Shown: in pieces, positions 19,562 through 61,527 of the stretch
How the letters are laid out: every line of letters begins with the position of its first letter
Numbering within the stretch: position 1 is the stretch's first letter
Source: Penicillus capitatus
Lineage: Eukaryota > Plantae > Chlorophyta
Direction: 5' to 3'
Assembly (NCBI GenBank): GCA_965649825.1
Contig: OZ287699.1
Coordinates: 772,377 to 836,376 of the forward strand
DNA length: 64,000 nt
Position numbers and translations under genes: made by a program
The notes under the pieces: generated by a model
What the model was told of the DNA's origin: nothing
The model's database searches: none
The model's input: only the letters and a program-made list of their open reading frames with translations

Positions 19562-20714
19562 CTGGAGCATGCTCAAATGATGAGTATTTATCGATGAATC
19601 TGACAATCCAACTCGAAAACAGATCATCGAAGCAGTGATAAGCGTCCACAGAAGAAATCGTAGATAGAAAACCAACTCTACGACTGGCATCGCCGCAATA
19701 GAGGCGCGATTTGATGTCAAGCGATGGCAGCTTATGGATGCCATCGACGCCGATCGATTCCATCGATCCACGTCCCGATCGTCTGCCCAACCATTGGAGA
19801 ACTAATGTGGAGTTCAACTGACGTCATTTAGGGCGATCGATCGCGTTTTAAGTAGAGTTTTATCTCTGTCGATTTTGCTTGATGGAAAGATCAGTCTCCA
19901 GCTTTTCGAATCTACAAAAGAAACGGAGCTACCTTTAGCGAAGATCGATTTTTTGGCTTAAATCAAGATGCGCAGCGCCGCTGTGACTTGGGATGAAAAT
20001 TTGATGCGACCCGACGAATCGATTAAGTTAACGACATAAGCATAGACATTGCGTTTTTAGAAAAGAAGACATCTGTTTCGTTCCGATCGCAACTGCGTCT
20101 CACCTGTAGAATCAATCCTTTAGTGCCTCATTCGAAATTACAAGCTAGAGTAACATTCTACTCGATTTGATTGTAATGTAAGAAACTGCTCATCTTGGCG
20201 CGTGTCCATCAGAAGACAGTTTTCGCTTGAATGCGCATGCACACTCAACAGAGAGAACGGGCTGTGATGATGGTACGTTCATTCATCGCAGCCATCAAAG
20301 CACGGATATTAATAACTAACCGCAGAGATTTATATGGTTTCGAGACGATCACAAGAAGAATCAACTCTCGAGCATGTTTGAAAAGTTCCACCACTCCAAC
20401 TTCCAGACAGCCATCGACCAGAAGTTAGAACAGGCATCGTTCCGGAAAGCATAGAAACCGATTGCTAAAATCGGACAAATGCACCGATGTGTCGACTAGG
20501 GATCTCTGATAGAGTAGTTCATCACCTGCGGCAGAGACATGGATTCTGAGAAGACCGTCGGGTATTGTGTCTTCAGCCTTTCCAGTACTCTACAGCCGTA
20601 GCAACGCAGAACGAAGGATTACTAGCTGTTATTTGTCTGCAACTATACTGATTCGCATACGAAGCATATACGGTTGGAAGGCAGGACGTTGGGACGCCAG
20701 AGCACCAACCATCC

Positions 20715-21949
20715 ATGCAAAGGCATCCGATTATCACGATGCGTTCCTGCACGGAACTCTCGGCGGAGTTCGTGCTGTCCGGCACAGATACTTCCGTCGC
20801 CAATGCTCTGAGGCGCATCATGATTGGCGAGATACCGACGATCGCGATCGAACTCGTCGAAATCGAGACCAACACGACCGTGCTGACGGACGACTTCCTG
20901 GCACATCGACTGGGACTCATCCCCCTGTCCTCTCTGCGTCGACATCCTCCGTCCCTGCGACGTGGGTTCTGATGGGACGTCTCTGTTCAGAGGCCGCCAA
21001 GATGGTGGGCGCCTACGACAACGCCGAGGAAGACATCGACGAGATCGAGCTGTTTCTGGACGTGCACTGCACGGAGGAAGAGCGAACGGTGCGGTCATGA
21101 GCATCGCTGCATCGCTGCACGGGGATGCTGTTCGCAGATGCTGGTCACATCGAAGGACTTGTCCGTGGGGACGCCCAACGTCGACGTGGTCCCCATCGGC
21201 CATCCGGGGTTCTGCTTCGACGACATAGCGAACATCCCGGTCACCGTCGTCAAACTGAGACAGGGACAGTCGCTCAAACTGAGGGCCATCGCCGTGAAGG
21301 TTCGCTCTCTTGTGAACTCCATGCATCGCCCGTGATCAGGTTTCTGCGCGAGACCAGGGAATCGGGAGAGACCACAGCAAGTGGAGCCCCGTCTCCGCCG
21401 CTTCCTTCACGAACATGCCCGAGATTGCCTTCAACGAATACGTCCTGGCCGGATGGTCCCCACAGCGCAAGATCGAGCTGTTCGAGGAGCTGGCCGAGTG
21501 CTTTCCGGTCGGGCGAAACCCCTTCTGCCTCGACCTGCCGGCCAAAAAGGTCGGTTCTCTCTGCCACACCCACCCGCCGACAAGTGCAGACCGACTGCCG
21601 CAGATGATTCTCAAGCCGGAGCTGTACAACTTTGACGACGCGCACGTTGCCGTGCTGGAGAAGCACGGGGTCCCGGACCTCTTCAAGATACAGTCGGTGC
21701 CGGGCACCTTCATCTTCAAAGTGCGTGTCCGCGATCAGATGCCGACGCGTTGCGATCTTCCTGTGCCGCACGCAGCTGGAGACGACCGGCGTGCTCGACG
21801 CCGCCGAAGTGCTGATGCAGTCCATCGACATCCTGGCGTCGAAGCTGAAGGACATTCGGCGAGCGATCAAGGCGGAGGCGCAGGGGAGCGACGGTGTTCC
21901 GATGCAGATGGACGAGGGACTTCAGGGCGGATACGACGACGGATACTGA
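20715..21949 (+). CDS. RPB3: RNA polymerase II subunit RPB3 (copy 1)
   Basis: AEFVLSGTDTSVANALRRIMIGEIPTIAIELVEIETNTTVLTDDFLAHRLGLIPL; VKLRQGQSLKLRAIAVKG; DHSKWSPV; FIFK/LETTGVLDAAEV. Confidence 0.9.
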
Positions 21950-22065
21950 CGCGTGTAGACGACGTCGCGTTCGATTCCCGCTGCCGCAGACAGACAGAGA
22001 GTCGGCTCTCAAAACATTACTCAGTGTGCGAACAGAGAGGTGTCCGTCGGAACGCAGGCGTGCGT

Positions 22066-23039
22066 CTAAGATCCCATGAAAACGCAGTCCGGGAACTGCA
22101 GTCTCGCGTCGTCCAGTGAGCGGCCCTGCTCTTCGTCTTGCCAGAAGTTGATCACCTGCGTGGCCCGGTTCAGCAGCAGGATCTGGGCATAGCGACAGAA
22201 GCGTCAGTGCGCAGTCGTTCGGCTCGGCGCGTCACTCGCCTGATCCGTTTCGTCGATCCACGCGTTCTCGCTCAGCCTCTGCCGGAGCTCCTCCCAGGCA
22301 TCGGTCCTCGGCCAGATGAAGTACTCCGTCAGCGGAATGCGCTTTCTCTACACGCACAAGGTCGCTTGGTCACAAGGAATGGACGGCGTTCGGATCGCTT
22401 GCGTTTCCGAAGATCTGGTCCACGGCGAACGCGATGTACTTGTCCAGCCACAGGAAGCTCAGCGCGAAGCCCTTCGGGCATCCGGATGGCGGGTCCTGAT
22501 CGGTGTCGGCCGAGATCTCTGCCTCCTCCTCGTCGTCGGCATCCGTCTCCTCCTCCTCCTCCTCGTCCAGCAGCGCCTCCATCGCTTCGCTGGGATCCGC
22601 GGCTTCGTCCTCGTCTCCGCCGAGGTCGGCTCCGAACCCCATCACCTCGTCGTCGTCGAGGTCGTCATCGTCGTCTCCGTAAAGATCCTCGTCGATGTAC
22701 TGGACAGGCGAGAGCGATCGCAGCGAGTACGGGGCGAGATCGCCGTACGGAGAATCGAAGGACCGAGCGCCTTGGCTGTCGAGGGATCGTTCTCCGACGG
22801 CGATGGGAGATGAGGCATCCCGGAGCAAGGGACGCCGATCGCGGCCACTCCGGTACCCTTCTCGATGCAGCGACCTGTCGGATCACACCACGTCGGGGCG
22901 GAAGAACGACTTCGGTGGCTGCGCCGACAGCCTCGACAAGCGGGCGACCGGGCGACCGAACGCAGTCGCTGACCTTCGACGGCCGGACGCCGCGAAGCAC
23001 GGGCACCGTGCGAACGGACGCGTTGACGAGCGGACCCAT
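22066..23039 (-). CDS. PSRP3: Plastid-specific 30S ribosomal protein 3 (Ycf65) precursor with acidic extension (copy 1)
   Basis: [20 protein letters not shown] / [22 protein letters not shown]...W / [15 protein letters not shown] is the PSRP-3/Ycf65 signature; Arg/Ser-rich transit-like N-terminus; start tentative. Confidence 0.88.
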
Positions 23040-23159
23040 GACCGAATCGATTTACACTCCGGAACAGGGCGATGCGTAACAAACTACTCTCAGTGAAAGA
23101 CCGAGCGACGGCAGTGATGTGACCGACGTCCGCGGTGCCGCATCGCCCGACCTCGCGAT

Positions 23160-23571
23160 CTAGGACGTGAAGAACCCTCCGCTCTCGTTTCGAGCGTAGC
23201 CCTGGAGCCACATGCGCCGACGTCCCGTCTGCAGAGTGGGGCGAACGGCTGCACCGGGTTGCGCTCGACCGGAGGATTCCGATCTCTCGGGTACCGAGAT
23301 GCGTCCACCCTCACCACTCGCAGGGTGCTCTGGTAGGAGACGTCGTCGCCGCTGGCCAGTCTCTGCAGCGCCTGTCGATGCGCCTCCTCGTCCGCGGACG
23401 CCTCGTGCGCGATCCACTGCAGCGGAACGCACGTCGACGTCCCGATGCGATGATCCACACGTGCCTCGCCCCTTCCCGCATGGCGCTGGGTCGCACGGTA
23501 GTTCTTCACCTGTCGGGACGGATCGCGCCCGTGCGACGCGCTTCGATTCGAACCTGCTGCCGGACGTCCAT
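23160..23571 (-). CDS. Unknown ~77 aa four-exon protein (copy 1)
   Basis: Three phase-0 introns (GT-AG, GC-AG, GT-AG) give MDVRQQ-VKNYRATQRHAGRGE-WIAHEASADEEAHRQALQRLASGDDVSYQSTLRV-TGRRRMWLQGYARNESGGFFTS*. Confidence 0.5.
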
Positions 23572-23874
23572 GCCGATCGATGCGTCGCCGCCGAACGATC
23601 CGCGTCCTGGAAATGGATCGACGATGACGCGACAGTCTCATTTCGTCGGTCTCGGCGTCCTTGATCGTCCATTACGAAGGGCGACAACTGTTTCGTCCTT
23701 CTCCATCGAGCGCGAACTCTCGTCTCGCCGATCGTTTATTTTCAGAGCGCGGCAGTCTGCGTTCGAACCCAATCGACCGCTGTCCGCATTCGTTGTCTTT
23801 GTTCGGCGTCTCCCTGCTCGTCTTCCTTCCCGTCTGGCGTTGTCGGTGCGTTTGTTCGTTCGCGTCCGAGTTCG

Positions 23875-26800
23875 ATGTCGGGCAGAGGAGGCGGAGGACG
23901 CGGTGGCTATGGAGGTAGGCTCGCACGCCTTCGCGCTCGGCGGCACACGCGTCTCGGCACCAACTGACGAACGCCGAAGGCGAACCGCGTCCTTCTGACG
24001 GTGGACGGATCTGTTGTAGGTCGTGGCAGGGACCGTGGCAGGGACCGCGGAAGAGGTCGCTTCGGCGGAAGAGGAGGAGGTGCGCCGTTCGCGCCGTCGC
24101 TCGTGCTGCTTCCTCACCGTTGTCTCGCGTTGAAGGTCGCGGCGACTTCCGCGCCGTGCCGGAGGCCGAAGGGCGTCGCCAGGTCGAGCAGATCGCGTCG
24201 TCTTTTCGCATCGAACAGCCGTGCATCTCGGTAGGCAACCCCGCTGCCGCATCGCCGCGATCCGAAGGCGTGTGCCTCGCAGGAGAGCATCGACAGTCCG
24301 GAGGCGCCGTCCTATCCGCCGGGCACCATCGGCACGCAGGCCCAGCTCGCGGCGAACTACTTCCAGCTGAACTGTCGGCTGAACAGCGCCTTCCAGTACA
24401 ACGTGACGATCGGTGAGGCACCTCGACGCCGGACGAGCTGCAGCGCGTGTGCGTGCGACAGAGTGCGAGTTCAATCAGGGACTGGAGCACCTGCTGCTCG
24501 CGGAGCTGGCCAGGAGGGAGGAATGGCCTCCGGGGTGGATCTTCGACGGCAAGAACGCCCTCTACACGGCCGGGCAGATCATATCGACCGACGAGCGCGA
24601 GGAGACCGTCGAGCTGGAGCAGGGTCCTAGGTCTCGCCAGTACAAGATCAAGCTGACCCAGACGACCGTGGTGCGCATGAGCCACCTGACGGAGTACGTC
24701 CAGCGCAGCCGAGCCGAGTTTCCGGCAGAACCCGTCCGCGTGCTGGAGATCCTGCTGTCCCACGCCGCGTCCCTGATGCCGGACAGGGTCCTCCACAGGA
24801 AGAGCGTCTTCGTCGACGCGCAGGCCAACAAGCGCGACATCGGACACGGAGCCGAGGTTCGATCCGCTCCGCCGCGATCGGATCCGTGGGCGATTGCTGC
24901 TGCTGCAGGCGTGGCTGGGGTACCACCAGAGCATCCGTCCCTGCCAGAACGGACTGTTCCTGAACATCGACAGCGCGTGCGCCCCGTTCTACAAGCCGAT
25001 GCTCGTCTCCGAGTTCATCGCCGAGATCCTCGGCCAGCAGCACGTCCCGCGAGAGCTCACCAACCAGCAGAAGTCGATCGTCAGAGGCGTCATGAAGAAC
25101 CTGACGGTGACGCCCTCTCTCGCCCGCGCGCCGCGCGGAGACGGGCGGCCGCTCTAGGTGAGTCTGGTGCGCGGGAGGATGCGGAAGAAGGTCGTCGGGC
25201 TGCTGGATCCGCCGACGCGCCTCAGCTTCGAGCACAGGGAGCACGGAGAGATCACCGTCGCCGAGTACTACGGGAGGATGGACTGTCCCCTCCACTACCC
25301 CGAGCTTCCCTGCCTGGACTGCTCGAGGGGCAGAAAGGTCTGCTTCCTGCCTCCGGAGTACGCACGGTAACGCCGAGCACCCGCCGCCGGTCGCTTGCTG
25401 ACGTCGACGGCCGCTTCCCCGCAGGATCGCCCACGCCCAGTTCGTGAACAAGATCACGGAGCGCCACCAGGAGCAGATGATCCGCTTCGCCGCCCAGAGG
25501 CCCGACGAGAAGGAGCGCTACCTGAACGGCCTGATCAGGGAGGACGCCGACATCAACCGGATGCAGAAGGTCCCGGACTTCCAGCTCTCGGCGCTGGAGC
25601 CCGCCATGAAGCAGATCCGCGGCCGCGTCCTCCCGTCCCCCTTCCTGTCCTACAAGGAGCCGGCCTGCTTCGACGTCGGCACCGAGGGGCAGTGGAACCT
25701 CGGGGGGATGACGATGAACTTCTTCAAGGCGAAGAAGCTCAAGTCCTGGGCGCTGCTCTCGCTGGCGCAGGAGCGCTACATCAACAGGCCCGGCGAGAAC
25801 GGCATCCAGTCGTTCCTGCACGAGCTCTACGAGGCCCTGAGGGCGCACACGGTCATCCCGTCCTCGGTCGACCTGTCGAGGCCGCCGATCGTCTACACCA
25901 GCGACTCCAACTTCATCCAGGACATGGAGCAGGCCAAGGCGCGGGCGCGTGATGCCTACGGCAGGGATCCGGACATCATCCTCTGTCTCATCCCCAGGAG
26001 AAGTGCGTGCTCTCATCCGCGCTGCCCCGATGGGACGCCTTCTGTGCCTCCGCAGATACGCGCCTGTACAAGATCGTCAAGCGGACGTCGGACGTCCACG
26101 TCGGCATTCCGACGCAGTGCTTCGCGGGGGACAAGTCCGGAGTCGGCGACAATCGGCCTCCCAGGGGACGCATGCAGTACTGCGCCAACCTGGCGCTCAA
26201 GATCAACGTGAAGGTATCCCCCTTCCCCTCTGCTCTCTCCGCAGAACGCACAGATCGATGCTCCGTAGGTGGGCGGCACCAACTCGGTCCTGCTGGGGAC
26301 GACGCAGTGCGGACTGCCCATGGTGCACCAGCGCCGACCCTACATCGTGCTGGGGGCGGACGTGTCGCACGCCTCGCCCGGATCGCATCTCTCGTCGATC
26401 GCCGCCGTGGTGGGCAGCGTCGATCCCATGGCGTCCCGCTACTCCAGCCGCATCACGTCGCAGCCGCCGCGCGAGGAGATCATCATCGACATGAAGGAGT
26501 CCGTCAAGGGACTCCTGCGCGACTTCTACGAGCACAACCACCAGAAGAAGCCGGAGTCCATCGTCGTGTTCCGGGACGGCGTGTCGGAGGGCTTCTTCAG
26601 CCGGGTGCTGACGCACGAGTACAGGGCCATCCGCGAGGCCTGCGGCGAGATGGGCGATCCGGCGGCGGACTACGCGCCGCCCATCACCTACATCATCATC
26701 CAGAAGAGGCACCACACGCGTCTGTTTCCGAAGGGGCAGAACGTCGCCCACCGGAGCGGGAACGTGAAGCCCGGGACGGTGGTGGACTCGGAGATCACCA

Positions 26801-27129
26801 GTCCCTACGGCCACGACTTCTTTCTCTGCTCCCAGGCGGGAATCCAGGGAACCGTGCGCCCGGCGCACTACCACGTGCTGGTGGACGAGAACAGATTCGG
26901 TTCGGACGCCATCCAGGTCATGTGCTACTGGATGTGCTACATGCAGTGCAGATGCACGAAGCCGATCTCGGTGCCGGCTCCGGCGAACTACGCCCATCTG
27001 GCGGCGCTGCGTGCGAGGCTGATCGCGGGCGAGGAGACGGACGACGAGACGAGCAGCATCGCATCGGGATCCGGGCCGTCGGCCGGACCCGCTTTCGGAG
27101 CTTCCCAGGCCAAGATGTACTACGTCTGA
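23875..27129 (+). CDS. AGO: Eukaryotic Argonaute, slicer-competent (copy 1)
   Basis: RGG-rich N-terminus; ANYF; FDGKNALYT; WLGYHQSIRP...LNID; PAZ-like ITVAEYY...YPELPCL...FLPPE; PIWI: PTQCF, NLALKINVK/MGGTN, GADVSH, PREE, FRDGVSEG, QKRHHTRLF, GTVRPAHYHVL, PAPANYAHLAA. Confidence 0.97.
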
Positions 27130-28368
27130 TGCCCGTGCGTCGGCGGCATCTATCGATCGGCCTTTTTGACAGGACTTATTGATCCTGTTCTCCTCGGTAC
27201 CTTTTTTTCGTGTTCTCGGCGCAGCTCTAGTCGCGGAAATCATCGACGACGTGCACTTATCTCTTGGCCGATGTGCTGTTGAGAGTCTTTGACTTCGATA
27301 GTGAGGGGGATGGATACCAGTCGGATGGATGGCGATGTCATTTGTCAACGTACTGTTTTTTGGCGATTTTCGATCGTGGGCAAGCAGAAGGGTGTTCTTA
27401 AAAGGGAGAGGGAAATGAATGGAGTGTTTAAGAAATGAGATATCTATCGGGAGTCGTCTAAGTGTGTTTGTATCGTGGGAACATTTGGCCTGTAGCAATA
27501 CACGAAATAAGGAAGGCGATACTCGAAGAAAGGATTTATACCGTCCTGAAAGTTGGGGCGGTAAGAGACAGGACGCGTCGAATTTCTGATTCGCACTGAC
27601 ACCGACATCTACTTGCTGCTTCTTCCTCCTAGAGGAACGGAGTCCAGCATTTCTATCTTCTGCGACGGCACAATGTCGGCGTTTTTCTGATGGTGCAGGA
27701 AGTGTGGGGGTTCGAATCGACTTCGAATCGTTGACGTCTGCTACGTTGTGCAGAGATTGTCGACAAGCAGAATATGACATCGAACGATGAACGAAACAAC
27801 AGCGGCTTCAAGTGGACGATGCGACCCTCTGTCTGGTTGTCCCTATGCGGCGAGCGTCTCTTTCGACGGTCATTCGCCGAAGGAAAGGCGGAATGAACCC
27901 CGTAGAAAGGTTGTTGACGATAGAGTCATTTCTTGAAGTCGATGTGCGCAGCATATCAATTTCTGTCGACTGATTGCCAAACAAGAGGACAGATGTGCGT
28001 TCAATTCCGAAAAGGTCGATTCGGACGGATGATAACATGTTGTCAAAAGTGACTAATACAATGGTATGACATGGATCAGATACTCTGTGTCCTGAAAGCA
28101 AGTCACGTTCGAGTTATTTTACGAGTTTCCAAAGGGTCTGCAATTTTGAATGACCTTCATTGTCAAATTGTTTGGCATAATATTCTCCCCTTGTCATCTG
28201 ATCAACAGACTCTGCTGCCTGATCTGTATCGTTTCAGTCGAACAGATCTCCAACAGAGTATTGTAAACAGCTAGAAGCCGCACGGTCACGCAGAACTGTT
28301 GTGGAGAGGATAAACGAATTGATCGAGCGCCTCAGTGCAAATCCTCTCTTTATGAGTTTAAGAATCGA

Positions 28369-43556: not shown

Positions 43557-45852
43557 GTGTCATGCAACAACAACACCGTCACTGTGAAAGCAAGGTTGTT
43601 CATTCAGAGGGTATTTATTCTAATATGGTTTGCCAACGACGATCTATCCGCCTGCGAGATGAGGCGCGCGTGTATACAGTTCTCGAATCTCCGCTTTGCG
43701 ACAGAACGCTCACCTGTGCTGGCATCGCGTGGGATGGTGGCGAGCACGCAGCCTTTGGCGTCCGAGGCAGGATTACGCATCTTGCGCCAAGGAGGCAACG
43801 CAGCAGATGCAGGCAAGACTCACACTTCGATCACCTCTGAAGCGAACTTCTCTGCGCTTAGCCGTGGCCATGGCTGCCGCTCTGAATGTCACGCAACCTT
43901 GGTCGACGGGTAAGGAAAGATCGTTGTGCAAAACCTTGCATCAAAGATGGATCTCAGGAATTGGAGGAGATGCTTGTGCATTGTACTACAACAGCTCAAG
44001 CAGAAAGGTTGAGAGTTTGAGTGGATTTGGACGATCGGGTGCCGCCTTTACCCGCGAACGCGTGATCGCTGATGGCTTTCAGAACTGTGCAATCCCTGCA
44101 GAGCACGGGTCTGTTGACAAACCAAATGCTCAGAGCAGTTACAAGTGGACTGTAGTTTGGCCGTCATGGTTCCTGGCGCTGTTCAGCTTTTTGACGACGT
44201 TTTGACGCACTGGGGACAGCTATCTTTCAAAGAGGTCTTACAGGATCGATTTCGCCATCAAATCAAGGAATCTGTCGCTGTCAGGTATTGGCTCCGGCCA
44301 TCGAGTTATGCGAGCACGGATTTCCAGTGGCCCCAATGTCCGCCGGTGGATGGAAAAAGGACTTCCATCGACTCAAGGCACGTGGATATTTGGCATAATG
44401 GCGCAAGGAGAAATGCAGATGTGCCTGCAGGGAGAAGGTTGTTCGTGCTACAAGACATCATCTGGTGAACCACCTTTTCCAGGAAAAAGGATGAAGAACT
44501 TGGATCTGGGTCACACTTTTCGACGCATCAGTGAAATGGGCGCCAGAAAAGGGTTTTACGAAGGAGAGATCGCCGAGGCCATCGTTGCAGCGGTGAAGCA
44601 ATTTGGCGGTGTGCTGACGCTCGATGATCTCAAGGCCATCGAATCTGCCCAACCTGTGACACCAACACACACAGCCTACAGAGGCTATCGTGTGTGGGAA
44701 GTGCCTCCTCCTAGTCAGGTAAGCAATCACCATCTAGTGCACCGCACCGCACCGCACCGCCCTACACCTGTTCGTACCTGTCAGGGGATCGTTGTCCTGG
44801 CCGCCCTGAATCATCTGGAAGAGCTGTTGCCGAATGCTTCCTCTGCCACGTGGGGATCGGACCATGTGCTCCATGCACAGATCGAGGCACTGCGTCTGGC
44901 TTTCTTTGATGCTTTGCAGTTCAACGCAGATCCAACGACGACAGAGGTTCCCATCGAGAGTCTGGTCGACAAGGAAGAAGCAGCAAAGCTCAGAGTCACA
45001 CATAGGCTATCTCGACAGGTCGGTCACTCATTTACAACATTCCTGTTAATTAGTCATGATGGTTGGCAGGCTTCAAGTTTGAAACGACGTGCGAATGCTG
45101 GAGATGAAGATGGCATCAAGGATTCGAACACTGTATATTTCTGCGCTGTCGATGCCGACGGAAATGCGTGCTCCTTCATCAACTCCATCTTTGAGGCATT
45201 TGGCACAGGTATTGTACCCGCAGGATGTGGATTTGCCTTGAACAACAGGTCATCACCCTTCTACGTGTTTGCATCTGTCTCACGTTGTCTGTAGAGGATG
45301 TTGCTTTTGCATGTCGGATGCTCATCCAAACTCCATCGGACCATCGAAGCGTCCCTATAATACGATCATACCTGGGATGTGTACTGACGATGAAGGGCAG
45401 CTATTCTGTGCATTTGGTGTCATGGGTGGATTCATGCAGCCTCAGGGTCAACTCCAAGTCTCATCCAGCATTCTGTCGTGCGCGATTGGATGTCATGCTG
45501 TGCAGGTGCTGACGGATCTGATTGATTTCAAGATGGATCCTCAAGCGGCATTGGACGCACCGCGATTCTGCATCACAGGCATCCATTCTTCATTGGGGCC
45601 TAAAACGGTGGAAGAAAGCAGGTGCCAAGACAATCTTCATGATTGGAGACATCTCAAATTTGTGTTCGTAGGGTGAGCATTGAGAATGGTTTCGACAACG
45701 AGGCTATCGAGAAACTGAAAGAGAGAGGCCATAGGGTGACACAAGATCTAAGCTGTTTTTATGGACACGGTCAAATCATTCTCCGCCGTTCCGAAGGCGT
45801 CCTGTGGGGTGGTACAGATCCTCGTGGAGACGGAGTAGTCATGGGATTCTGA
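43557..45852 (+). CDS. GGT: Gamma-glutamyltranspeptidase / glutathione hydrolase
   Basis: RSPVLASRGMVASTQPLASEAG; GGNAADA; SNTVYFCAVDADGNACSFINS (catalytic Thr); KRPYNTIIPGM; FGVMGGFMQPQG; GGTDPRGDG. Start uncertain. Confidence 0.95.
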
Positions 45853-52200: not shown

Positions 52201-54061
52201 CTAGTGGAGATTGCTTCCTCTGATGGCCATGTCATTCGAAGAGATGCGCAGCTTCTTTCGGAGCATCACGCAGAGACTCTCCAGGACGAGGGACAGAGCC
52301 GTCTCGAAGGAGGCACCCATCTGCATGATGCTCATCCTTCCCTCCGGCAGCGAGGACACCATCTCCGCGTCCAGACCTCCAAGCTTTCTGTTCATGACCG
52401 GCATAGAGGGCGGCAACGTCTGCGATGCGATGCGTATCACGCCATCCACGAATGGCAAGGGAGCCGTCTTGTGCGCCGTGAACGCAACCACGCGTGCTCT
52501 CGACCTCAGTGCCTCCAGGGACAGCGCATTCACCTAGAGCAACACGCACGCACCATCCACGCTCAGTCCCACAAGATCAGGAAAAGGGGGCGTGGGATAC
52601 CGTGCTGTAGTAACTCGGTCCAGCCGCGACTACGAAGAGATCGCCGGTCGTCAGCGCAGGGGTGTTGGTATCTCCCACGAAGTAGGCCTTGAAACCCAGG
52701 TTGTGCAGATTGATGGCGAAGGCTTTCAGAACGAGTCCTTCTCGGCCGACGCCATAGCAGCAAATGCGATTGGCATCTCGAATCGCACGCGCCAGTCCTG
52801 TCACATCTCGAGGGTCGACAGACTGAAGAATTGTGGACAATTCATCGAGCACAGCTGACTGCACGTAGCCAAAGTCTTCATTCCTCCTGTCCTCCTGTCT
52901 TTCTCTCTTGTTCCCAATCATCATCGGTGCATCAATGTTGTCGGAGTCGAAAGTGCTTGATTCCTCGGAACGAGGTTCGCTTTGCTGCAGACATGCATTC
53001 GCCGTCAGCGTCATACGGCGCCGCCGGGATCGCACCTTGATTGGATCACGCTTGTATCGTGCGAGTCTGTTCTTCAGCCACACAGACACCTGCAGCTCCG
53101 TCACCGGACCTGCCTCCTGCACAGCCCGAAACAGCTCTGGCGTTGCCTTGGTGTATCCTGCAGCAGCACGGCATCCGTTCGGTCGACTGCGTGTCAGATG
53201 GCGAGGATCGGCGTGCCTGTTCGAAAGTGTTGCTCCAGATGATGAAGCTGCGTGTTGTTCGGCTTCCATCTGTTCTTGGGCGCCGTGCCGCACGAGTCTT
53301 CGCTCCGACGCTGAGGTGAGGCGCGCTGTGATGTCATCTCTTCCTTGACGACAGGCTCATTCCACGACGCGCTGCGAATCGCAAGAGATGGCTCGAACAG
53401 TCCCGCGCCACATCGATGGGTGGGATGCTCCATCTGCTGCGGTTGGCTCGATAGTGTCGGCGGCAGCGTCTTCGACACGTGGAAGGCGTCGGACGGCAAT
53501 GACCTGTCGAAGTCTGTGATCAGCAGTCGGTTCGATGCGGCCACGTGCAGCTGCTGCAGACTCCCCACGGACGCCTGGGCTTCCTGGTGCAGACTCGCCG
53601 CCGTTGTCAAGTAATCCCTGAGAACATCCATCGATGGGAGATTGGGAGAATCGAATGACGGACTTTGTGAATGTCCTCGCCGAGGCGGGATCGAGTGAGT
53701 CGGTCAGGTCGTCGTAGATGCGGTCTCCTGACATGGGAGGGGGCGAGCTTCCACTGCTGGCGTTCTGAAAGGGACATTGCGTCGTCAAGGGCTGACTGTA
53801 CAGTCCTGGACACTCGTCAAAGAATCCACACCCCTCGGCCATCGGCGTCGTCTGGAACTCGTGCGCCTGAAGATTTCCGAATGCGGGGGAAAGCGGATAG
53901 CTCTGGCTGTAGCACAAAGGACCGCCTCCACTCGTGAGCTGCGTCGTCGAAGCGGAATCGGTCGAAAGATCGTTCGGAACGAATGGCGCAAGAAAGCTCT
54001 CCTGCGTGCACAGCGCCAGGTCTTCTGGGGAGATATGCACGTCGATTAATCCCGTGTCCAT
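52201..54061 (-). CDS. WOX-like homeodomain fused to SIS (3-hexulose-6-phosphate isomerase-like) domain
   Basis: Acidic S/P/T-rich N-terminus; KNRWKPNNTQLHHLEQHFRTG/YTKATPELFRAVQEAGPVTELQVSVWLKNRLARYKR; then CYGVGREGLVLKAFAINLHNLG...VGDTNTP...GDLFVV and QMGASFETAL...SNLH*. Helices 2-3 and the SIS N-half share ORF 52577-53293. Confidence 0.85.
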
Positions 54062-54930
54062 GCTTCAACGACCGGTTCTTCCTGAAACAACGACGACGCC
54101 GTCAGGGAGGGGTCTTCCGCCCGTTGTGTTACGAGGTGCCGCGGAATGGCGATGGTTGAAGCGTGGGATGGTAAAGACGAGCTGTCGATGGACCGTCAAA
54201 GGACTAGCTTGGAAGTGATGGCCTCGGTAGCGATGAGACCAATAGAGACGCAGAGAGCGAGGAAGGTCCAACCGTCGACGCAGATGTTTAGACGCAGGTA
54301 ATGGCACGAAGACCCTTTTTGGAGACGGGATAAGGTGCTGTCAATATCTCGGCGGCAGCCGCACGGCGTTTTGGCTCTCCGTCAGGTACGAATGGCGGTT
54401 AGACGAAGGCGCCAACGAGGTCGAGGCGACAACCGCGATGGACTGCAGGTGTCCTGAACACGCAGTCGGGTGTCGATGCCATGCAGTGTGCATGTAAGCT
54501 GCTGACGCGGATGCGGGCACGGTTAGGAAATGGCGAACGACGGTGCGCCGTTGTGGATCGCGAGGGACAGGACTGAGGCATTTCTGGCCTCATGTCTGTG
54601 AGACGACTCTCGATAGATATCTCATTTCTTAAACACTCCATTCATTTCCCTCTCCCTTTTAAGAACACCCTTCTGCTTGCCCACGATCGAAAATCGCCAA
54701 AAAACAGTACGTTGACAAATGACATCGCCATCCTTCCGACTGGTATCCATCCCCCTCACTATCGAAGTCAAAGACTCTCAACAGCACATCGGCCAAGATA
54801 TAAGTGCACGTCGTCGATGATTTCCGCGACTAGAGCTGCGCCGAGAACACGAAAAAAAGGTACCGAGGAGAACAGGATCAATAAGTCCTGTCAAAAAGGC
54901 CGATCGATAGATGCCGCCGACGCACGGGCA

Positions 54931-57900
54931 TCAGACGTAGTACATCTTGGCCTGTGAAGCTCCGAAAGCGGGTCCGGCCGACGGCCCGGATCCCGATGCG
55001 ATGCTGCTCGTCTCGTCGTCCGTCTCCTCGCCCGCGATCAGCCTCGCACGCAGCGCCGCCAGATGGGCGTAGTTCGCCGGAGCCGGCACCGAGATCGGCT
55101 TCGTGCATCTGCACTGCATGTAGCACATCCAGTAGCACATGACCTGGATGGCGTCCGAACCGAATCTGTTCTCGTCCACCAGCACGTGGTAGTGCGCGGG
55201 GCGCACGGTTCCCTGGATTCCCGCCTGGGAGCAGAGAAAGAAGTCGTGGCCGTAGGGACTGGTGATCTCCGAGTCCACCACCGTCCCGGGCTTCACGTTC
55301 CCGCTCCGGTGGGCGACGTTCTGTCCCTTCGGAAACAGACGCGTGTGGTGCCTCTTCTGGATGATGATGTAGGTGATGGGCGGCGCGTAGTCCGCCGCCG
55401 GATCGCCCATCTCGCCGCAGGCCTCGCGGATGGCCCTGTACTCGTGCGTCAGCACCCGGCTGAAGAAGCCCTCCGACACGCCGTCCCGGAACACGACGAT
55501 GGACTCCGGCTTCTTCTGGTGGTTGTGCTCGTAGAAGTCGCGCAGGAGTCCCTTGACGGACTCCTTCATGTCGATGATGATCTCCTCGCGCGGCGGCTGT
55601 GACGTGATGCGGCTGGAGTAGCGGGACGCCATGGGATCGACGCTGCCCACCACGGCGGCGATCGACGAGAGATGCGAGCCGGGCGAGGCGTGCGACACGT
55701 CCGCCCCCAGGACGATGTAGGGTCGGCGCTGGTGCACCATGGGCAGTCCGCACTGCGTCGTCCCCAGCAGGACCGAGTTGGTGCCGCCCACCTACGGAGC
55801 ATCGATCCCTGCGTTCCGCGGAGAGGAGAGGGGAAGGGAAATACCTTCACGTTGATCTTGAGCGCCAGGTTGGCGCAGTACTGCATGCGTCCCCTCGGAG
55901 GCCGATTGTCGCCGACTCCGGACTTGTCCCCCGCGAAGCACTGCGTCGGAATGCCGACGTGGACGTCCGACGTCCGCTTGACGATCTTGTACAGGCGCGT
56001 ATCTGCGGAGGCACAGAAGGCGTCCGATCGGGGCCGCGCAGATGAGAGCGCGCACTTCTCCGGGGGATGAGACAGAGGATGATGTCCGGATCCCTGCCGT
56101 AGGCATCACGCGCCCGCGCCTTGGCCTGCTCCATGTCCTGGATGAAGTTGGAGTCGCTTGTGTAGACGATCGGCGGCCTCGACAGGTCGACCGAGGACGG
56201 GATGACCGTGTGCGCCCTCAGGGCCTCGTAGAGCTCGTGCAGGAACGACTGGATGCCGTTCTCGCCGGGCCTGTTGATGTAACGCTCCTGCGCCAGCGAC
56301 AGCAGCGCCCAGGACTTGAGCTTCTTCGCCTTGAAGAAGTTCATCGTCATCCCCCCGAGGTTCCACTGCCCCTCGGTGCCGACGTTGAAGCAGGCCGGCT
56401 CCTTGTAGGACAGGAAGGGCGACGGGAGGACGCGTCCGCGGATCTGCTTCATGGCGGGCTCCAGCGCCGAGAGCTGGAAGTCCGGGACCTTCTGCATCCG
56501 GTTGATGTCGGCGTCCTCCCTGATCAGGCCGTTCAGGTAGCGCTCCTTCTCGTCGGGCCTCTGGGCGGCGAAGCGGATCATCTGCTCCTGGTGGCGCTCC
56601 GTGATCTTGTTCACGAACTGGGCGTGGGCGATCCTGCGGGGAAGAGGCCGTCGACGTCAGCAAGCGACCGGCGGCGGGTGCTCGGCGTTACCGTGCGTAC
56701 TCCGGAGGCAGGAAGCAGACCTTTCTGCCCCTCGAGCAGTCCAGGCAGGGGAGCTCGGGGTAGTGGAGGGGACAGTCCATCCTCCCGTAGTACTCGGCGA
56801 CGGTGATCTCTCCGTGCTCCCTGTGCTCGAAGCTGAGGCGCGTCGGCGGATCCAGCAGCCCGACGACCTTCTTCCGCATCCTCCCGCGCACCAGACTCAC
56901 CTAGAGCGGCCGCCCGTCTCCGCGCGGCGCGCGGGCGAGAGAGGGCGTCACCGTCAGGTTCTTCATGACGCCTCTGACGATCGACTTCTGCTGGTTGGTG
57001 AGCTCGCGCGGGACGTGCTGCTGGCCGAGGATCTCGGCGATGAACTCGGAGACGAGCATCGGCTTGTAGAACGGGGCGCACGCGCTGTCGATGTTCAGGA
57101 ACAGTCCGTTCTGGCAGGGACGGATGCTCTGGTGGTACCCCAGCCACGCCTGCAGCAGCAGCAATCGCTCACGGATCCGATCGCGGCGCAGCGGATCGAA
57201 CCTCGGCTCCGTGTCCGATGTCGCGCTTGTTGGCCTGCGCGTCGACGAAGACGCTCTTCCTGTGGAGGACCCTGTCCGGCATCAGGGACGCGGCGTGGGA
57301 CAGCAGGATCTCCAGCACGCGGACGGGCTCTGCCGGAAACTCGGCTCGGCTGCGCTGGACGTACTCCGTCAGGTGGCTCATGCGCACCACGGTCGTCTGG
57401 GTCAGCTTGATCTTGTACTGGCGAGACCTAGGACCCTGCTCCAGCTCGACGGTCTCCTCGCGCTCGTCGGTCGATATGATCTGCCCGGCCGTGTAGAGGG
57501 CGTTCTTGCCGTCGAAGATCCACCCCGGAGGCCACTCCTCCCTCCTGGCCAGCTCCGCGAGCAGCAGGTGCTCCAGTCCCTGATTGAACTCGCACTCTGT
57601 CGCACGCACACGCGCTGCAGCTCGTCCGGCGTCGAGGTGCCTCACCGATCGTCACGTTGTACTGGAAGGCGCTGTTCAGCCGACAGTCCAGCTGGAAGTA
57701 GTTCGCCGCGAGCTGGGCCTGCGTGCCGATGGTGCCCGGCGGATAGGACGGCGCGTCCGGACTGTCGATGCTCTCCTGCGAGGCACACGCCTTCGGATCG
57801 CGGCGATGCGGCAGCGGGGTTCCCTACCGAGATGCACGGCTGTCCGATGCGAAAAGACGACGCGATCTGTTCGACCTGGCGGCGCCCTTCGGCCTCCGGC

Positions 57901-58183
57901 ACGGCGCGGAAGTCGCCGCGACCTTCAACGCGAGACACCGGTGAGGGAGCAGCACGAGCGACGGCGCGAACGGCGCACCTCCTCCTCTTCCGCCGAAGCG
58001 GCCTCTTCCGCGGTCCCTGCCACGGTCCCTGCCGCGACCTACAACAGATCCGTCCACCGTCAGAACGACGCGGTTCGCCTTCGGCGTTCGGCAGTTGGTG
58101 CCGAGACGCGTGTGCCGCCGAGCGCGAAGGCGTGCGAGCCTACCTCCATAGCCACCGCGTCCTCCGCCTCCTCTGCCCGACAT
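54931..58183 (-). CDS. AGO: Eukaryotic Argonaute, slicer-competent (copy 2)
   Basis: PIWI ORF 54931-55791 translates identically to 26269-27129; few amino-acid differences elsewhere (e.g. ACFNVG vs ACFDVG). Confidence 0.97.
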
Positions 58184-58486
58184 CGAACTCGGACGCGAAC
58201 GAACAAACGCACCGACAACGCCGGACGGGAAGGAAGACGAGCAGGGAGACGCCGAACGGGGACAACGAATGCGGACAGCTGTCGATTGGGTTCGAACGCA
58301 GACTGCCGCGCTCGGAAAATAAACGATCGGCGAGACGAGAGTTCGCGCTCGATGGAGAAGGACGAAACAGTTGTCGCCCTTCGTAATGGACGATCAAGGA
58401 CGCCGAGACCGACGAAATGAGACTGTCGCGTCATCGTCGATCCATTTCCAGGACGCGGATCGTTCGACGGCGACGCATCGATCGGC

Positions 58487-58898
58487 ATGGACGTCCGGCA
58501 GCAGGTTCGAATCGAAGCGCATCGCACAGGCGCGATCCGTCCCGACAGGTGAAGAACTACCGTGCGACCCAGCGCCATGCGGGAAGGGGCGAGGCACGTG
58601 TGGATCATCGCATCGGGACGTCGACGTGCGTTCCGCTGCAGTGGGTCGCGCACGAGGCGTCCGTGGACGAGGAGGCGCATCGACAGGCGCTGCAGAGACT
58701 GGCCAACGGCGACGACGTCTCCTACCAGAGCACCCTGCGAGTGGTGAGGGTGGACGCATCTCGGTACCCGAGAGACCGGAATCCTCCGGTCGAGCGCAAC
58801 CCGGTGCAGCCGTTCACCCCTCTCTGCAGACGGGACGTCGGCGCATGTGGCTCCAGGGCTACGCTCGAAACGAGAGCGGAGGGTTCTTCACGTCCTAG
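58487..58898 (+). CDS. Unknown ~77 aa four-exon protein (copy 2)
   Basis: Same splice model as copy 1; differs at WVAH/WIAH, SVDE/SADE and LANG/LASG; ends GYARNESGGFFTS*. Confidence 0.5.
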
Positions 58899-59018
58899 AT
58901 CGCGAGGCCGGGCGATGCGGCACCGCGGACGTCGGTCACGTCACTGCCGTCGCTCGGTCTTTCACTGAGAGTGGTTTGTGACGCGTCGCCCTCTTCCGGA
59001 GTGTAAATCGATTTGGTC

Positions 59019-59989
59019 ATGGGTCCGCTCGTCAACGCGCCAATTCGCACGGTGCCCGTGCTTCGCGGCGTCCGGCCGTCGAAGGTCAGCGACTGCGTTC
59101 GGTCGCCCGGTCGCCCGCTTGTCGAGGCTGTCGGCGCAGCCACCGAAGTCGTTCTTCCGCCCCGACGTGGTGTGATCCGACAGGTCGCTGCATCGAGAAG
59201 GGTACCGGAGTGGCCGCGATCGGCGTCCCTTGCTCCGGGATGCCTCATCTCCCATCGGCGTCGGAGAACGATCCCTCGACAGCCAAGGCGCTCGGTCCTT
59301 CGATTCTCCGTACGGCGATCTCGCCCCGCACCTGCTGCGATCGCTCTCGCCTGTTCAGTACATCGACGAGGACCTGTACGGAGACGACGATGACGACCTC
59401 GACGACGACGAGGTGATGGGGTTCGGAACCGATCTCGGCGGAGACGAGGACGAAGCCGCGGATCCCAGCGAAGCGATGGAGGCGCTGCTGGACGAGGAGG
59501 AGGAGGAGACGGATGCCGACGACGAGGAGGAGGCAGAGATCTCGGCCGACACCGAACAGGACCCGCCATCCGGATGCCCGAAGGGCTTCGCGCTGAGCTT
59601 CCTGTGGCTGGACAAGTACATCGCGTTCGCCGTGGACCAGATCTTCGGAAACGCAAGCGATCCGAACGCCGTCCATTCCTTGTGACCAAGAGACCTTGTG
59701 CGTGTAGAGAAAGCGTATTCCGCTGACGGAGTACTTCATCTGGCCGAGAACCGATGCCTGGGAGGAGCTCCGGCAGAGACTGAGCGAGAACGCGTGGATC
59801 GACGAAACGGATCAGGCGAGTGACGCGTCGAGCCGAACGACTGCGCACTGACGCGTCTGTCGCTATGCCCAGATCCTGCTGCTGAACCGGGCCACGCAGG
59901 TGATCAACTTCTGGCAAGACGAAGAGCAGGGCCGCTCACTGGACGACGCGAGACTGCAGTTCCCGGACTGCGTTTTCATGGGATCTTAG
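59019..59989 (+). CDS. PSRP3: PSRP-3/Ycf65 precursor (copy 2)
   Basis: [48 protein letters not shown]; poly-Glu tract one codon shorter than in copy 1. Confidence 0.88.
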
Positions 59990-60105
59990 ACGCACGCCTG
60001 CGTTCCGACGGACACCTCTCTGTTCGCACACTGAGTAATGTTTTGAGAGCAGACTCTCTGTCTGTCTGCGGCCGCGGGAATCGAACGCGACGTCGTCTAC
60101 ACGCG

Positions 60106-61336
60106 TCAGTATCCGTCGTCGTATCCGCCCTGAAGTCCCTCGTCCATCTGCATCGGAACACCGTCGCTCCCCTGCGCCTCCGCCTTGATCGCTCGCCGAA
60201 TGTCCTTCAGCTTCGACGCCAGGATGTCGATGGACTGCATCAGCACTTCGGCGGCGTCGAGCACGCCGGTCGTCTCCAGCTGCGACACAGGAAGATCGCA
60301 ACGCGTCGGCATCTGATCGCGGACACCCACTTTGAAGATGAAGGTGCCCGGCACCGACTGTATCTTGAAGAGGTCCGGGACCCCGTGCTTCTCCAGCACG
60401 GCAACGTGCGCGTCGTCAAAGTTGTACAGCTCCGGCTTGAGAATCATCTGCGGCAGTCGGTCTGCACTTGTCGGCGGGTGGGTGTGGCAGAGAGAACCGA
60501 CCTTTTTGGCCGGCAGGTCGAGGCAGAAGGGGTTTCGCCCGACCGGAAAGCACTCGGCCAGCTCCTCGAACAGCTCGATCTTGCGCTGTGGGGACCATCC
60601 GGCCAGGACGTATTCGTTGAAGGCAATCTCAGGCATGTTCGTGAAGGAAGCGGCGGAGACGGGGCTCCACTTGCTGTGGTCTCTCCCGATTCCCTGGTCT
60701 CGCGCAGAAACCTGATCACGGGCGATGCAGGGAGTTCACAAGAGAGCGAACCTTCACGGCGATGGCCCTCAGTTTGAGCGACTGTCCCTGTCTCAGTTTG
60801 ACGACGGTGACCGGGATGTTCGCTATGTCGTCGAAGCAGAACCCCGGATGGCCGATGGGGACCACGTCGACGTTGGGCGTCCCCACGGACAAGTCCTTCG
60901 ATGTGACCAGCATCTGCGAACAGCATCCCCGTGCAGCGATGCAGGGATGCTCATGACCGCACCGTTCGCTCTTCCTCCGTGCAGTGCACGTCCAGAAACA
61001 GCTCGATCTCGTCGATGTCTTCCTCGGCGTTATCGTAGGCGCCCACCATCTTGGCGGCCTCTGAACAGAGACGTCCCATCAGAACCCACGTCGCAGGGAC
61101 GGAGGATGCCGACGCAGAGAGGACAGGGGGATGAGTCCCAGTCGATGTGCCAGGAAGTCGTCCGTCAGCACGGTCGTGTTGGTCTCGATTTCGACGAGTT
61201 CGATCGCGATCGTCGGTATCTCGCCAATCATGATGCGCCTCAGAGCATTGGCGACGGAAGCATCTGTGCCGGACAGCACGAACTCCGCCGAGAGTTCCGT
61301 GCAGGAACGCATCGTGATAATCGGATGCCTTTGCAT
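60106..61336 (-). CDS. RPB3: RNA polymerase II subunit RPB3 (copy 2)
   Basis: Same motifs as copy 1; head-to-head with the aldolase gene. Confidence 0.9.
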
Positions 61337-61527
61337 GGATGGTTGGTGCTCTGGCGTCCCAACGTTCTGCCTTCCAACCGTATATGCTTCGTATACGGTC
61401 CGCTCCACGTGGCACCCACTGTCCTGATCCCTTTTAAACAGACGGTCATCAAGGGGTGCAACCTTTGGTTCTCGCGTTTCTTCGTCTCTTTACGTTCTAC
61501 TGCATTGGCATACCTCTGTCGCGCAAG

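Follow-up and report, generated by a model that had tools for sequence, protein, structure and literature searches.

Can a eukaryotic homeodomain protein take its cue from a domain derived from a sugar-phosphate isomerase, much as bacterial RpiR regulators do? This question is raised by a gene in 64,000 nucleotides of the green alga Penicillus capitatus (GenBank assembly GCA_965649825.1, contig OZ287699.1, forward-strand positions 772,377 to 836,376), a stretch that we call the window and whose own numbering is used below. The gene lies on the minus strand (54061..52201), and its five exons encode a 545-residue protein which comprises, from N- to C-terminus, a Ser/Pro/Thr-rich region, a 61-residue homeodomain, a disordered basic linker and a SIS (sugar isomerase) domain. 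An earlier note, made from the letters of the window, had proposed this homeodomain-SIS (HD-SIS) fusion and had read it as a convergent eukaryotic counterpart of RpiR. We find that both domains lie on one polypeptide, that related algae carry the same architecture, and that the SIS domain probably no longer acts as an enzyme in this protein.

Gene model and transcript support

The coding sequence runs from an ATG at 54061 to a stop codon at 52203-52201. Between these points the minus strand carries three long open reading frames (ORFs) in different frames, plus a fourth. The first (53357..54061) opens with the ATG and encodes the Ser/Pro/Thr-rich N-terminus, and the second (53194..53631) ends with NRWKPNNTQLHHLEQHFRTG. 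The third (52577..53293) is stop-free over 238 residues and holds both homeodomain helices 2-3 (YTKATPELFRAVQEAGPVTELQVSVWLKNRLARYKR) and the first SIS half (ICCYGVGREGLVLKAF...VGDTNTP...GDLFVVAAGPSYYSTV). The fourth (52201..52533) carries on with NALSLEALRS...MGASFE...SNLH and the stop. The exons that join these frames were compared with L003, a 2257-nt Logan contig of a relative (SRR28002480) whose uninterrupted 525-residue ORF encodes protein P0001 (68% identical). The resulting model is as follows.

53664..54061, minus strand: exon 1, with the ATG at 54061-54059; Ser/Pro/Thr-rich region, residues 1-133; collinear with the N-termini of P0001, P0002 and P0003; L003 24-268 aligns (blastn) to 54048-53792
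53618..53663, minus strand: intron 1, 46 nt, GT-AG (aaa/GTCCGT...TCTCAG/gga); moves the frame from the 54061 ORF to the homeodomain ORF; support at the protein level only
53217..53617, minus strand: exon 2, remaining N-terminal region with the conserved LLEPSL motif, then homeodomain arm and helix 1 (RWKPNNTQLHHLEQHFRTG); L003 518-759 aligns to 53460-53216
53158..53216, minus strand: intron 2, 59 nt, GC-AG (cag/GCACGC...CTGCAG/gat)
53036..53157, minus strand: exon 3, homeodomain helices 2-3 (YTKATPELFRAVQEAGPVTELQVSVWLKNRLARYKRDPIK); L003 756-858 aligns to 53160-53058
52985..53035, minus strand: probable intron 3, 51 nt, GT-AG, in frame (aag/GTGCGA...CTGCAG/caa); its retention would lengthen the linker by 17 residues (VRSRRRRMTLTANACLQ)
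52601..52984, minus strand: exon 4, linker (conserved basic GNKRERQ motif, DF motif) and first SIS half (GVGREG, VGDTNTP, GDL, AAGPSYYSTV); L003 922-1257 aligns to 52934-52599
52534..52600, minus strand: intron 4, 67 nt, GT-AG, within the SIS domain (acg/GTATCC...CTCTAG/gtg); site of a tblastn frame switch; skipped by L003
52201..52533, minus strand: exon 5, second SIS half (AFTAHKTAPLP, MGASFE, ...RGSNLH) and the TAG stop at 52203-52201

More than 20 homologues are collinear with this model, and with homologues of 517-583 residues the agreement extends from Met1 to the C-terminus. Introns 2 and 4 are real because L003 lacks exactly these stretches: in the nucleotide alignment, neighbouring nucleotides of L003 fall on 53216 and 53160, and again on 52599 and 52533. 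L003, which carries the N-terminus, the homeodomain and the SIS domain on one intron-less contig, is transcript-like and resembles the spliced mRNA of a relative. The GC-AG intron by which the earlier note had joined helix 1 to the remainder of the homeodomain is thus borne out. Its removal gives ...HFRTG/YTKATPE..., and no GT donor was found for it ahead of the in-frame stop. At the exact RTG/Y codon of this intron, Caulerpa lentillifera P0003 (g5967.t1) bears a 20-residue insert (IVIFQTLSPNRPPECLCFLG, residues ~276-295), which is probably this intron, not removed by the gene predictor in the published model; if so, its position and phase have been kept between genera.

Introns 1 and 3 are additions to the earlier splice model and leave the fusion of homeodomain and SIS domain unaffected. 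Removal of intron 1 gives ...RTFTK/DYLTT..., to be compared with ...SFTR/DCLAM... in P0001. The 17 residues encoded by intron 3 are missing from every homologue, and this protein-level comparison makes its removal from the mRNA probable. Two further observations of the note hold on the raw sequence and against the homologues, namely that helices 2-3 share one stop-free ORF with the first SIS half, and that a Ser/Pro/Thr-rich N-terminus precedes the homeodomain. Translation of the whole protein from the ATG at 53631 was considered and rejected, as the homologues are collinear from 54061.

At 46, 59, 51 and 67 nt, all four introns of the gene are very short, and one of them has a GC donor. In public catalogues the locus appears only as prokaryote-style single-ORF pieces of 230 residues (P0201, 52577-53293; on a 1.58-Mb contig of the ENA metagenome assembly ERZ25074695), 234 residues and 105 residues. 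Such cataloguing of eukaryotic contigs as fragments in metagenome assemblies hides multi-exon, multi-domain proteins.

A WOX-like homeodomain

The DNA-binding half of the protein and the region that follows it are placed as follows.

53042..53283, minus strand: homeodomain, residues 245-305, split by intron 2; 61 residues with R5, W48, K50, N51 and R55, and one extra residue in the turn between helices 2 and 3
52877..53041, minus strand: linker, residues 306-343, split by intron 3; predicted to be disordered (pLDDT <50, model residues 62-98)

The earlier note had called for a scan with homeodomain profiles. Pfam Homeodomain (PF00046) matches across nearly its entire length (positions 2-57 of 57, E=7e-4), though at 19.8 bits, under the gathering score of 22.9, and 18 of the 24 family members match it (best E 4.7e-7). 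The AlphaFold model contains three helices (10-21, 29-38 and 43-59) at pLDDT 82-93. The residues by which homeodomains contact DNA are present as R5, W48 and N51, with R55 as the basic residue of positions 53/55. R5, W48, K50, N51 and R55 are invariant among 16 family members, as is the recognition helix WLKNRLAR, with Leu49, Lys50 and Leu53. When a profile of these 16 homeodomains was compared with the PDB, Bicoid ranked first (5e-7), followed by STENOFOLIA (9e-7) and WUSCHEL (6e-6), and all others scored 2.5e-4 or worse.

The assignment to the WOX type, which the note had based on motifs, holds in part. The WOX signature of the arm and helix 1, RWxPxxxQ..LE..F..G, is present (RWKPNNTQLHHLEQHFRTG) and aligns to STENOFOLIA and WUSCHEL; the family shares with the WOX class the RWxPxxxQ arm, L16, E17, F20, G23 and A54-R55. 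WOX homeodomains, however, have about 65-66 residues against 61 here, and HMMER places insertions of 4-5 residues in WUS and STF, whereas the homeodomain is longer than that of Bicoid by one residue only. The WOX recognition helix reads WFQN(H/R)(K/R)AR with Gln50, whereas HD-SIS has Lys50, as do Bicoid and Otx, with Leu49 and Leu53. No WUS box was found in the HD-SIS protein. Because the WOX-defining insertions are absent, position 50 is Lys and the WUS box is missing, the homeodomain is, by its sequence features, WOX-like but not WOX. WOX genes are known from mamiellophyte green algae (PMC2775110, PMC3913392).

Within the linker, a basic KR.R motif with an invariant lysine (K333) is a possible nuclear localisation signal. 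N-terminal to the homeodomain, at residues 190-215 (~53450-53380), the motif G(L/M)(L/F)EPSL(T/A) is shared by the Bryopsidales paralogues (the window protein and P0001-P0009) but is not conserved in Tetraselmis or the Trebouxiophyceae; it may serve to bind a partner.

A SIS domain of a distinct isomerase-like subfamily

The SIS domain and an insertion within it lie at the following positions.

52204..52876, minus strand: SIS domain, residues 344-545, split by intron 4; of a 'GREG/SAGPG' subfamily that resembles 6-phospho-3-hexuloisomerase (PHI)
52357..52413, minus strand: SIS insertion of ~20-25 residues (PPSMPVMNRKLGGLDAEMVSSLPEG), unaligned against 1JEO and 1M3S; disordered (pLDDT <50, model residues 232-250)

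Pfam SIS (PF01380) matches with E=6e-4 (20.2 bits, below its threshold of 25) and is matched by 4 of the 24 family members. Scanning one protein for a homeodomain and a SIS domain, as the note had proposed, thus recovers both, each under its gathering cut-off. A much stronger match is obtained with the NCBIfam model TIGR03127 (RuMP_HxlB, E=7e-29), at 100.9 bits, below the equivalog cut-off of 160. Among PDB sequences the domain matches 9LJ9 (a fusion of hexulose-phosphate synthase (HPS) and PHI), 1JEO (MJ1247), 1M3S (YckF) and 1VIM (AF1796), and its AlphaFold model superposes on YckF, MJ1247, AF1796, 9LJ9 and 1VIV with Foldseek TM values of 0.81-0.85 (E down to 4e-14). The next-best structural matches behind the PHI enzymes are RpiR-type regulators (NanR, MurR and RccR), and NanR and RccR, taken at full length, align across more than 300 columns.

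A profile search, exhaustive over 1.84 billion representative proteins, and a tabulation of motifs set the subfamily apart by G.GREG, SAGPG.F, MGS.YE and a C-terminal RHTNLE, against GRSG, SGSGET, MGS.FE and RHANLE in canonical enzymes. With PHI/HxlB/YckF proteins (TIGR03127) the window SIS domain has in common GxGR, VG(D/E)..TP, GDL, MG..FE and ..NL(E). It differs from them in its two phosphate-binding loops (GVGREG for GxGRSG; AAGPSYY for SGSG(E/K/R)T), in the loss of four residues (R, H, H and E), in the 20-25-residue insertion and in being fused to a homeodomain. The insertion (PPSMPVMNRKLGG...SSLPEG) is conserved within the Bryopsidales clade and has no counterpart in stand-alone enzymes. 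GREG-type relatives that stand alone score 122-167 bits on TIGR03127, mostly at or below the cut-off, while P0051, with GRER/SSGTG loops, reaches 185. Profiles and motifs trace the SIS domain back to a sugar-phosphate isomerase that was PHI-like and belonged to the GREG/SAGPG subfamily. The earlier placement in the HxlB/YckF family therefore needs narrowing: the domain is PHI-like, but belongs to a separate subfamily with both phosphate loops changed and a sub-equivalog score, whose bacterial members adjoin no HPS gene in the five loci described below.

Pocket conservation

We took the columns conserved in at least 85% of 39 stand-alone GREG-type proteins and compared them with 9 canonical PHI and 19 fusion proteins. 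The fusion family retains GxGR(E), G404, G411, D422, G429-P430, A443, T454, E512 (the Glu of MG..FE) and N543. No variation is seen in GxGRE, D, AGP, FT, the Glu of MG..FE or the N of ..NL., even among members only 26-66% identical to the window protein. By contrast, the fusions show relaxation at four positions that never vary among the 48 stand-alone proteins; in the window protein these positions read N399 (for R), N402 (for H), G541 (for H) and H545 (for the C-terminal E). From the PHI-invariant set (R of MRL, H of HLG, E of MG..FE and H, N and E of RHxNLE), the window protein keeps only E512 and N543. The Glu of MG..FE, which we take to be the annotated PHI proton acceptor, is kept in 18 of the 19 sampled fusion members and is Asp in the other.

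The losses are unevenly spread over the family. Myrmecia P0022, Bryopsis P0017, P0016 and MMETSP P0030 keep all enzyme-invariant residues (R, H, the E of MG..FE and RHTNLE), whereas up to four are lost in the window protein and its closest relatives P0001, P0002, P0003 and P0009. When an enzyme domain turns into a binding or regulatory module, the pocket scaffold is expected to stay intact while enzyme-invariant residues disappear in some lineages, as they do here. Because four such residues are replaced, the SIS domain of the window protein is probably a non-catalytic module for binding or oligomerisation. The same loss would fit a sensor or pseudoenzyme and, equally, a pure oligomerisation module. 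Which of the conserved columns are catalytic is something we infer from the alignment.

Stand-alone relatives and their bacterial loci

The top-scoring relatives that are not fusions are stand-alone GREG-type SIS proteins of ~185-250 residues, which lack a homeodomain and keep all enzyme-invariant residues. In bacteria this subfamily forms more than 6,400 clusters at 90% identity, automatically named 'SIS domain-containing protein' or '6-phospho-3-hexuloisomerase'; no characterised member was found. We examined gene neighbourhoods at five bacterial loci (L004, L006, L007, L008 and L009) from Alphaproteobacteria, Chloroflexota and Deinococcota. At all five, the GREG-type gene lies within or adjoins sugar or polyol ABC-transporter genes and is accompanied by an AP_endonuc_2 isomerase and by a SorC or DeoR regulator. 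Four also hold an FGGY, Dak or PfkB kinase, and three hold short-chain or zinc dehydrogenases. An OMPdecase-type HPS gene adjoins the GREG-type gene at none of the five.

Sugar and polyol uptake loci with kinases suggest that the ancestral ligand was probably a phosphorylated ketose or aldose, among which hexulose-6-phosphate is not demonstrable. By the same genomic context, the bacterial GREG-type proteins are probably a different, uncharacterised ketose-phosphate isomerase, and the 'hexuloisomerase' label a mis-annotation. In eukaryotes, stand-alone members with N-terminal extensions occur in Ostreobium (P0034) and the ulvophyte Acetabularia (P0038). The land-plant SIS protein AT5G52190, for which transfer from alpha-proteobacteria has been reported (PMC3493653), may belong to the same stand-alone group.

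Distribution and origin of the fusion

The search across algae for which the note had called recovered the same fusion in several green-algal classes. HD-SIS proteins occur in four copies each in Caulerpa lentillifera (P0002, P0003, P0200 and P0031) and Ostreobium quekettii (P0004, P0012, P0019 and P0021) and in two copies in Bryopsis sp. (P0009 and P0017), as well as in Trebouxia spp., Myrmecia bisecta, Tetraselmis striata, the MMETSP transcript P0030 and several metagenomic or SRA contigs. Of the named relatives, those of Caulerpa lentillifera are closest to the window protein, followed by those of Ostreobium and Bryopsis, by which the host would be an ulvophyte, probably allied to Bryopsidales. 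About 10 clusters at 50% identity bear both domains among the 1.84 billion representatives, and the architecture is found in independent annotations of at least seven species. By these comparisons the HD-SIS architecture is conserved and under purifying selection in Bryopsidales, Trebouxiophyceae and Chlorodendrophyceae.

In their sources these proteins are named 'hypothetical protein' or 'Homeobox domain-containing protein'; among the matches listed, no precomputed Pfam annotation shows the two domains together, only one of them or none. As each domain falls just under its Pfam threshold, automated surveys of domain architecture miss the fusion. The note had known of no described homeodomain+SIS architecture, and we came to the same result: a search of 8.3 million papers on algae or eukaryotes, which is no proof of absence from the literature, for homeobox or homeodomain in combination with SIS, sugar isomerase or RpiR returned no description of it. 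Nor is the architecture mentioned where the plant homeobox classification, the Caulerpa genome paper and the WOX evolution paper were searched by term.

In a neighbour-joining tree, all fusion proteins fall in one clade beside algal stand-alone forms. With Kimura distances, some of them saturated, the bootstrap value of this clade is 14% (42% without P0030), and that of the canonical PHI split is 65%. Given such values, a single origin of the fusion and an algal donor are suggested by the tree rather than demonstrated.

Genomic surroundings

Annotation of the rest of the window located a large inverted repeat and several genes beside the HD-SIS gene.

20654-27459 / 54601-61397: arms of an inverted repeat, ~6.8 kb per arm, 98-99% complementary, 27.1 kb apart, high in GC (60-66%), each with an Argonaute-like gene
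54934-55791, minus strand: Piwi domain of the Argonaute-like gene in the right arm, E=7.5e-79
55850-56614, minus strand: ArgoMid domain of the same arm
44308-45294, plus strand: gamma-glutamyl transpeptidase, Pfam 4e-43
16849-17934, minus strand: OB-fold of DNA polymerase delta subunit B, Pfam 3e-18
10339-11817, minus strand: RSE1/DDB1/CPSF1 beta-propeller, Pfam 2e-10

The start of the HD-SIS gene lies 540 bp inside the inner edge of the right arm, and no HD-SIS copy is present at the mirror position of the repeat (~28-29.5 kb). The repeat could be a real segmental inverted duplication or an assembly artefact in a metagenomic long-read contig. A second, inverted HD-SIS copy (L002) lies ~24.5 kb off on the same contig, past the right end of the window (ctg340523_41x_l 800598-805290, or ~75.1-79.8 kb in window coordinates, including the upstream Argonaute-side flank). 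Across 3.9 kb the two copies are 99.3% identical; the coding sequence of L002 is intact, with 4 nucleotide and 3 amino acid changes (E21D, Y135F and T137N), all in the N-terminal region; similarity between the copies stops ~860 bp downstream of the stop codon, near 51337. An origin from a bacterial contaminant or an organelle was considered and rejected on account of the spliceosomal introns and of the Argonaute, DNA polymerase delta subunit and DDB1/CPSF1-like genes: such ordinary nuclear gene content around the HD-SIS gene supports a eukaryotic origin of the contig.

A candidate metabolite-responsive transcription factor

We lean towards the view that the gene encodes a nuclear transcription factor of an unnamed core-chlorophyte family, in which the output of the homeodomain is tuned by a ligand held in the pocket of a former isomerase, a logic resembling that of RpiR and reached independently. 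The homeodomain would bind DNA, and Lys50 suggests a predicted core resembling TAATCC. The SIS domain would make the protein a dimer or tetramer, by analogy with SIS enzymes and RpiR regulators, and would bind a small phosphorylated metabolite derived from a sugar or polyol in the retained pocket (GxGRE, D422, GP429-430, T454, E512 and N543). Occupancy of this pocket may then alter the oligomeric state or the geometry of the domains and, through it, DNA binding or activation, again by analogy; in the clade of the window protein the SIS domain is probably no longer an enzyme.

Several observations weigh against this view. Both Pfam matches lie below their gathering thresholds, and position 53 of the homeodomain is Leu, where Arg53 is a common backbone contact. 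The four lost residues may include some that serve binding and not catalysis alone. Both phosphate loops of the SIS domain depart from the classical form (GRSG has Glu for Ser, and AAGPSYY stands in place of SGSGET), so that even the stand-alone subfamily cannot be assumed to bind phosphosugars. Finally, bootstrap values of 14-42% give weak support to a single fusion event.

A constitutive role of the SIS domain, which would dimerise or tetramerise the homeodomain in the manner of the HD-ZIP leucine zipper and exert no control by small molecules, seems to us rather unlikely, although part of the evidence would suit it well. SIS enzymes and RpiR regulators oligomerise through this very domain, four enzyme-invariant residues are gone from the window protein, and its two phosphate loops are non-canonical. 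A dimer-tetramer arrangement is described for NanR (PMC12713135). What such a scaffold fails to account for is that loop and pocket motifs (GxGRE, D422, AGP, E512 and N543) stay invariant, and not surface or interface positions alone, since their long retention is not expected from selection on a scaffold. A protein that both binds DNA and remains an active sugar-phosphate isomerase, as a moonlighting or trigger enzyme, we regard as improbable here; it would be more plausible for the members that keep every invariant residue (Myrmecia P0022, Bryopsis P0017, P0016 and MMETSP P0030), and the presumed catalytic Glu is kept almost throughout the sampled family (18 of 19, with Asp in the other). 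In the window protein and in P0001, P0002, P0003 and P0009, however, up to four such residues are gone, among them two of the RHxNLE tail, namely its His and its C-terminal Glu. Moreover, Ostreobium, which also has the fusion, carries a stand-alone paralogue with all residues (P0034), and Acetabularia another (P0038), so that an enzymatic role need not sit in the fusion.

It is very improbable that the fusion is an artefact of the gene model, whether two adjacent genes, mutually exclusive transcripts or a pseudogene. The sole gene call on record is indeed the prokaryote-style 230-residue ORF P0201, and the locus lies in a repeat-rich region of inverted duplication that is possibly mis-assembled. 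Yet a single stop-free ORF spans helices 2-3 and half of the SIS domain, the coding sequence is intact in both genomic copies, and the same architecture recurs in the annotations of at least seven species and on the intron-less L003.

The reading of HD-SIS as a ligand-tuned transcription factor can be extended to a wider proposal, which we offer as tentative. HD-SIS might constitute a eukaryotic 'one-component' system, in which DNA binding is switched by a phosphosugar of central carbon metabolism (for example a pentose-phosphate, Calvin-cycle or tetrulose phosphate) in the pocket of a former enzyme. It might have arisen once, at the base of the core chlorophytes, from a WOX-like homeodomain and a bacterial-type PHI-like isomerase, and might have multiplied in the siphonous Bryopsidales (Caulerpa and Ostreobium have at least four copies each), in which a single giant cell has to coordinate its metabolism and its nuclear programmes.

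Direct control of transcription factors by metabolites through enzyme-derived sensors is the rule in bacteria, and few cases are known in eukaryotes, among them nuclear receptors, HD-ZIP START proteins and the Mondo/ChREBP factors, which sense glucose-phosphate. If the proposed function is correct, the HD-SIS family gives green algae a simple link from sugar-phosphate pools to gene expression. The plant-lineage homeobox genes would also gain a class, and the family might show what became of WOX-like genes in core chlorophytes. For bacteria, the fact that a large 'hexuloisomerase' subfamily accompanies polyol and sugar uptake genes, and not the ribulose monophosphate pathway, flags a probable mis-annotation.

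Comparison with known regulators

RpiR, MurR, NanR, HexR and RccR show the same domain order as HD-SIS, with an N-terminal DNA-binding domain of the helix-turn-helix type and a C-terminal SIS domain. The SIS domain of RpiR-family proteins is no longer catalytic; it binds a phosphosugar and brings about oligomerisation. The DNA-binding domain of RpiR and MurR is HTH_6, whereas HD-SIS has a eukaryotic homeodomain and a nuclear host. No match to HTH_6 (PF01418) was found in the window protein at E values up to 1, and its SIS domain resembles PHI-like enzymes (E=7e-29) far more than it does the SIS domains of RpiR proteins (E=9e-5). Direct descent from RpiR was rejected on these two grounds, which instead point to an analogue formed by independent fusion and not to a member of the RpiR family. 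Of the convergent counterpart of RpiR that the earlier note had envisaged, the fusion on one polypeptide, the domain order and the independent origin are therefore upheld, while the likeness in function is drawn by analogy.

Among plant-lineage proteins, HD-ZIP III/IV factors (homeodomain and START, with or without MEKHLA) likewise combine a homeodomain with a presumed small-molecule-binding domain; the HD-ZIP classes are reviewed in PMC2775110. Their partner domain is a START fold of the lipid/sterol type and comes with a leucine zipper, whereas HD-SIS has an enzyme-derived, Rossmann-like SIS domain and no zipper. The idea of a transcription factor joined to a ligand-binding domain is thus already known, and its nearest eukaryotic precedent to HD-SIS is the HD-ZIP START architecture.

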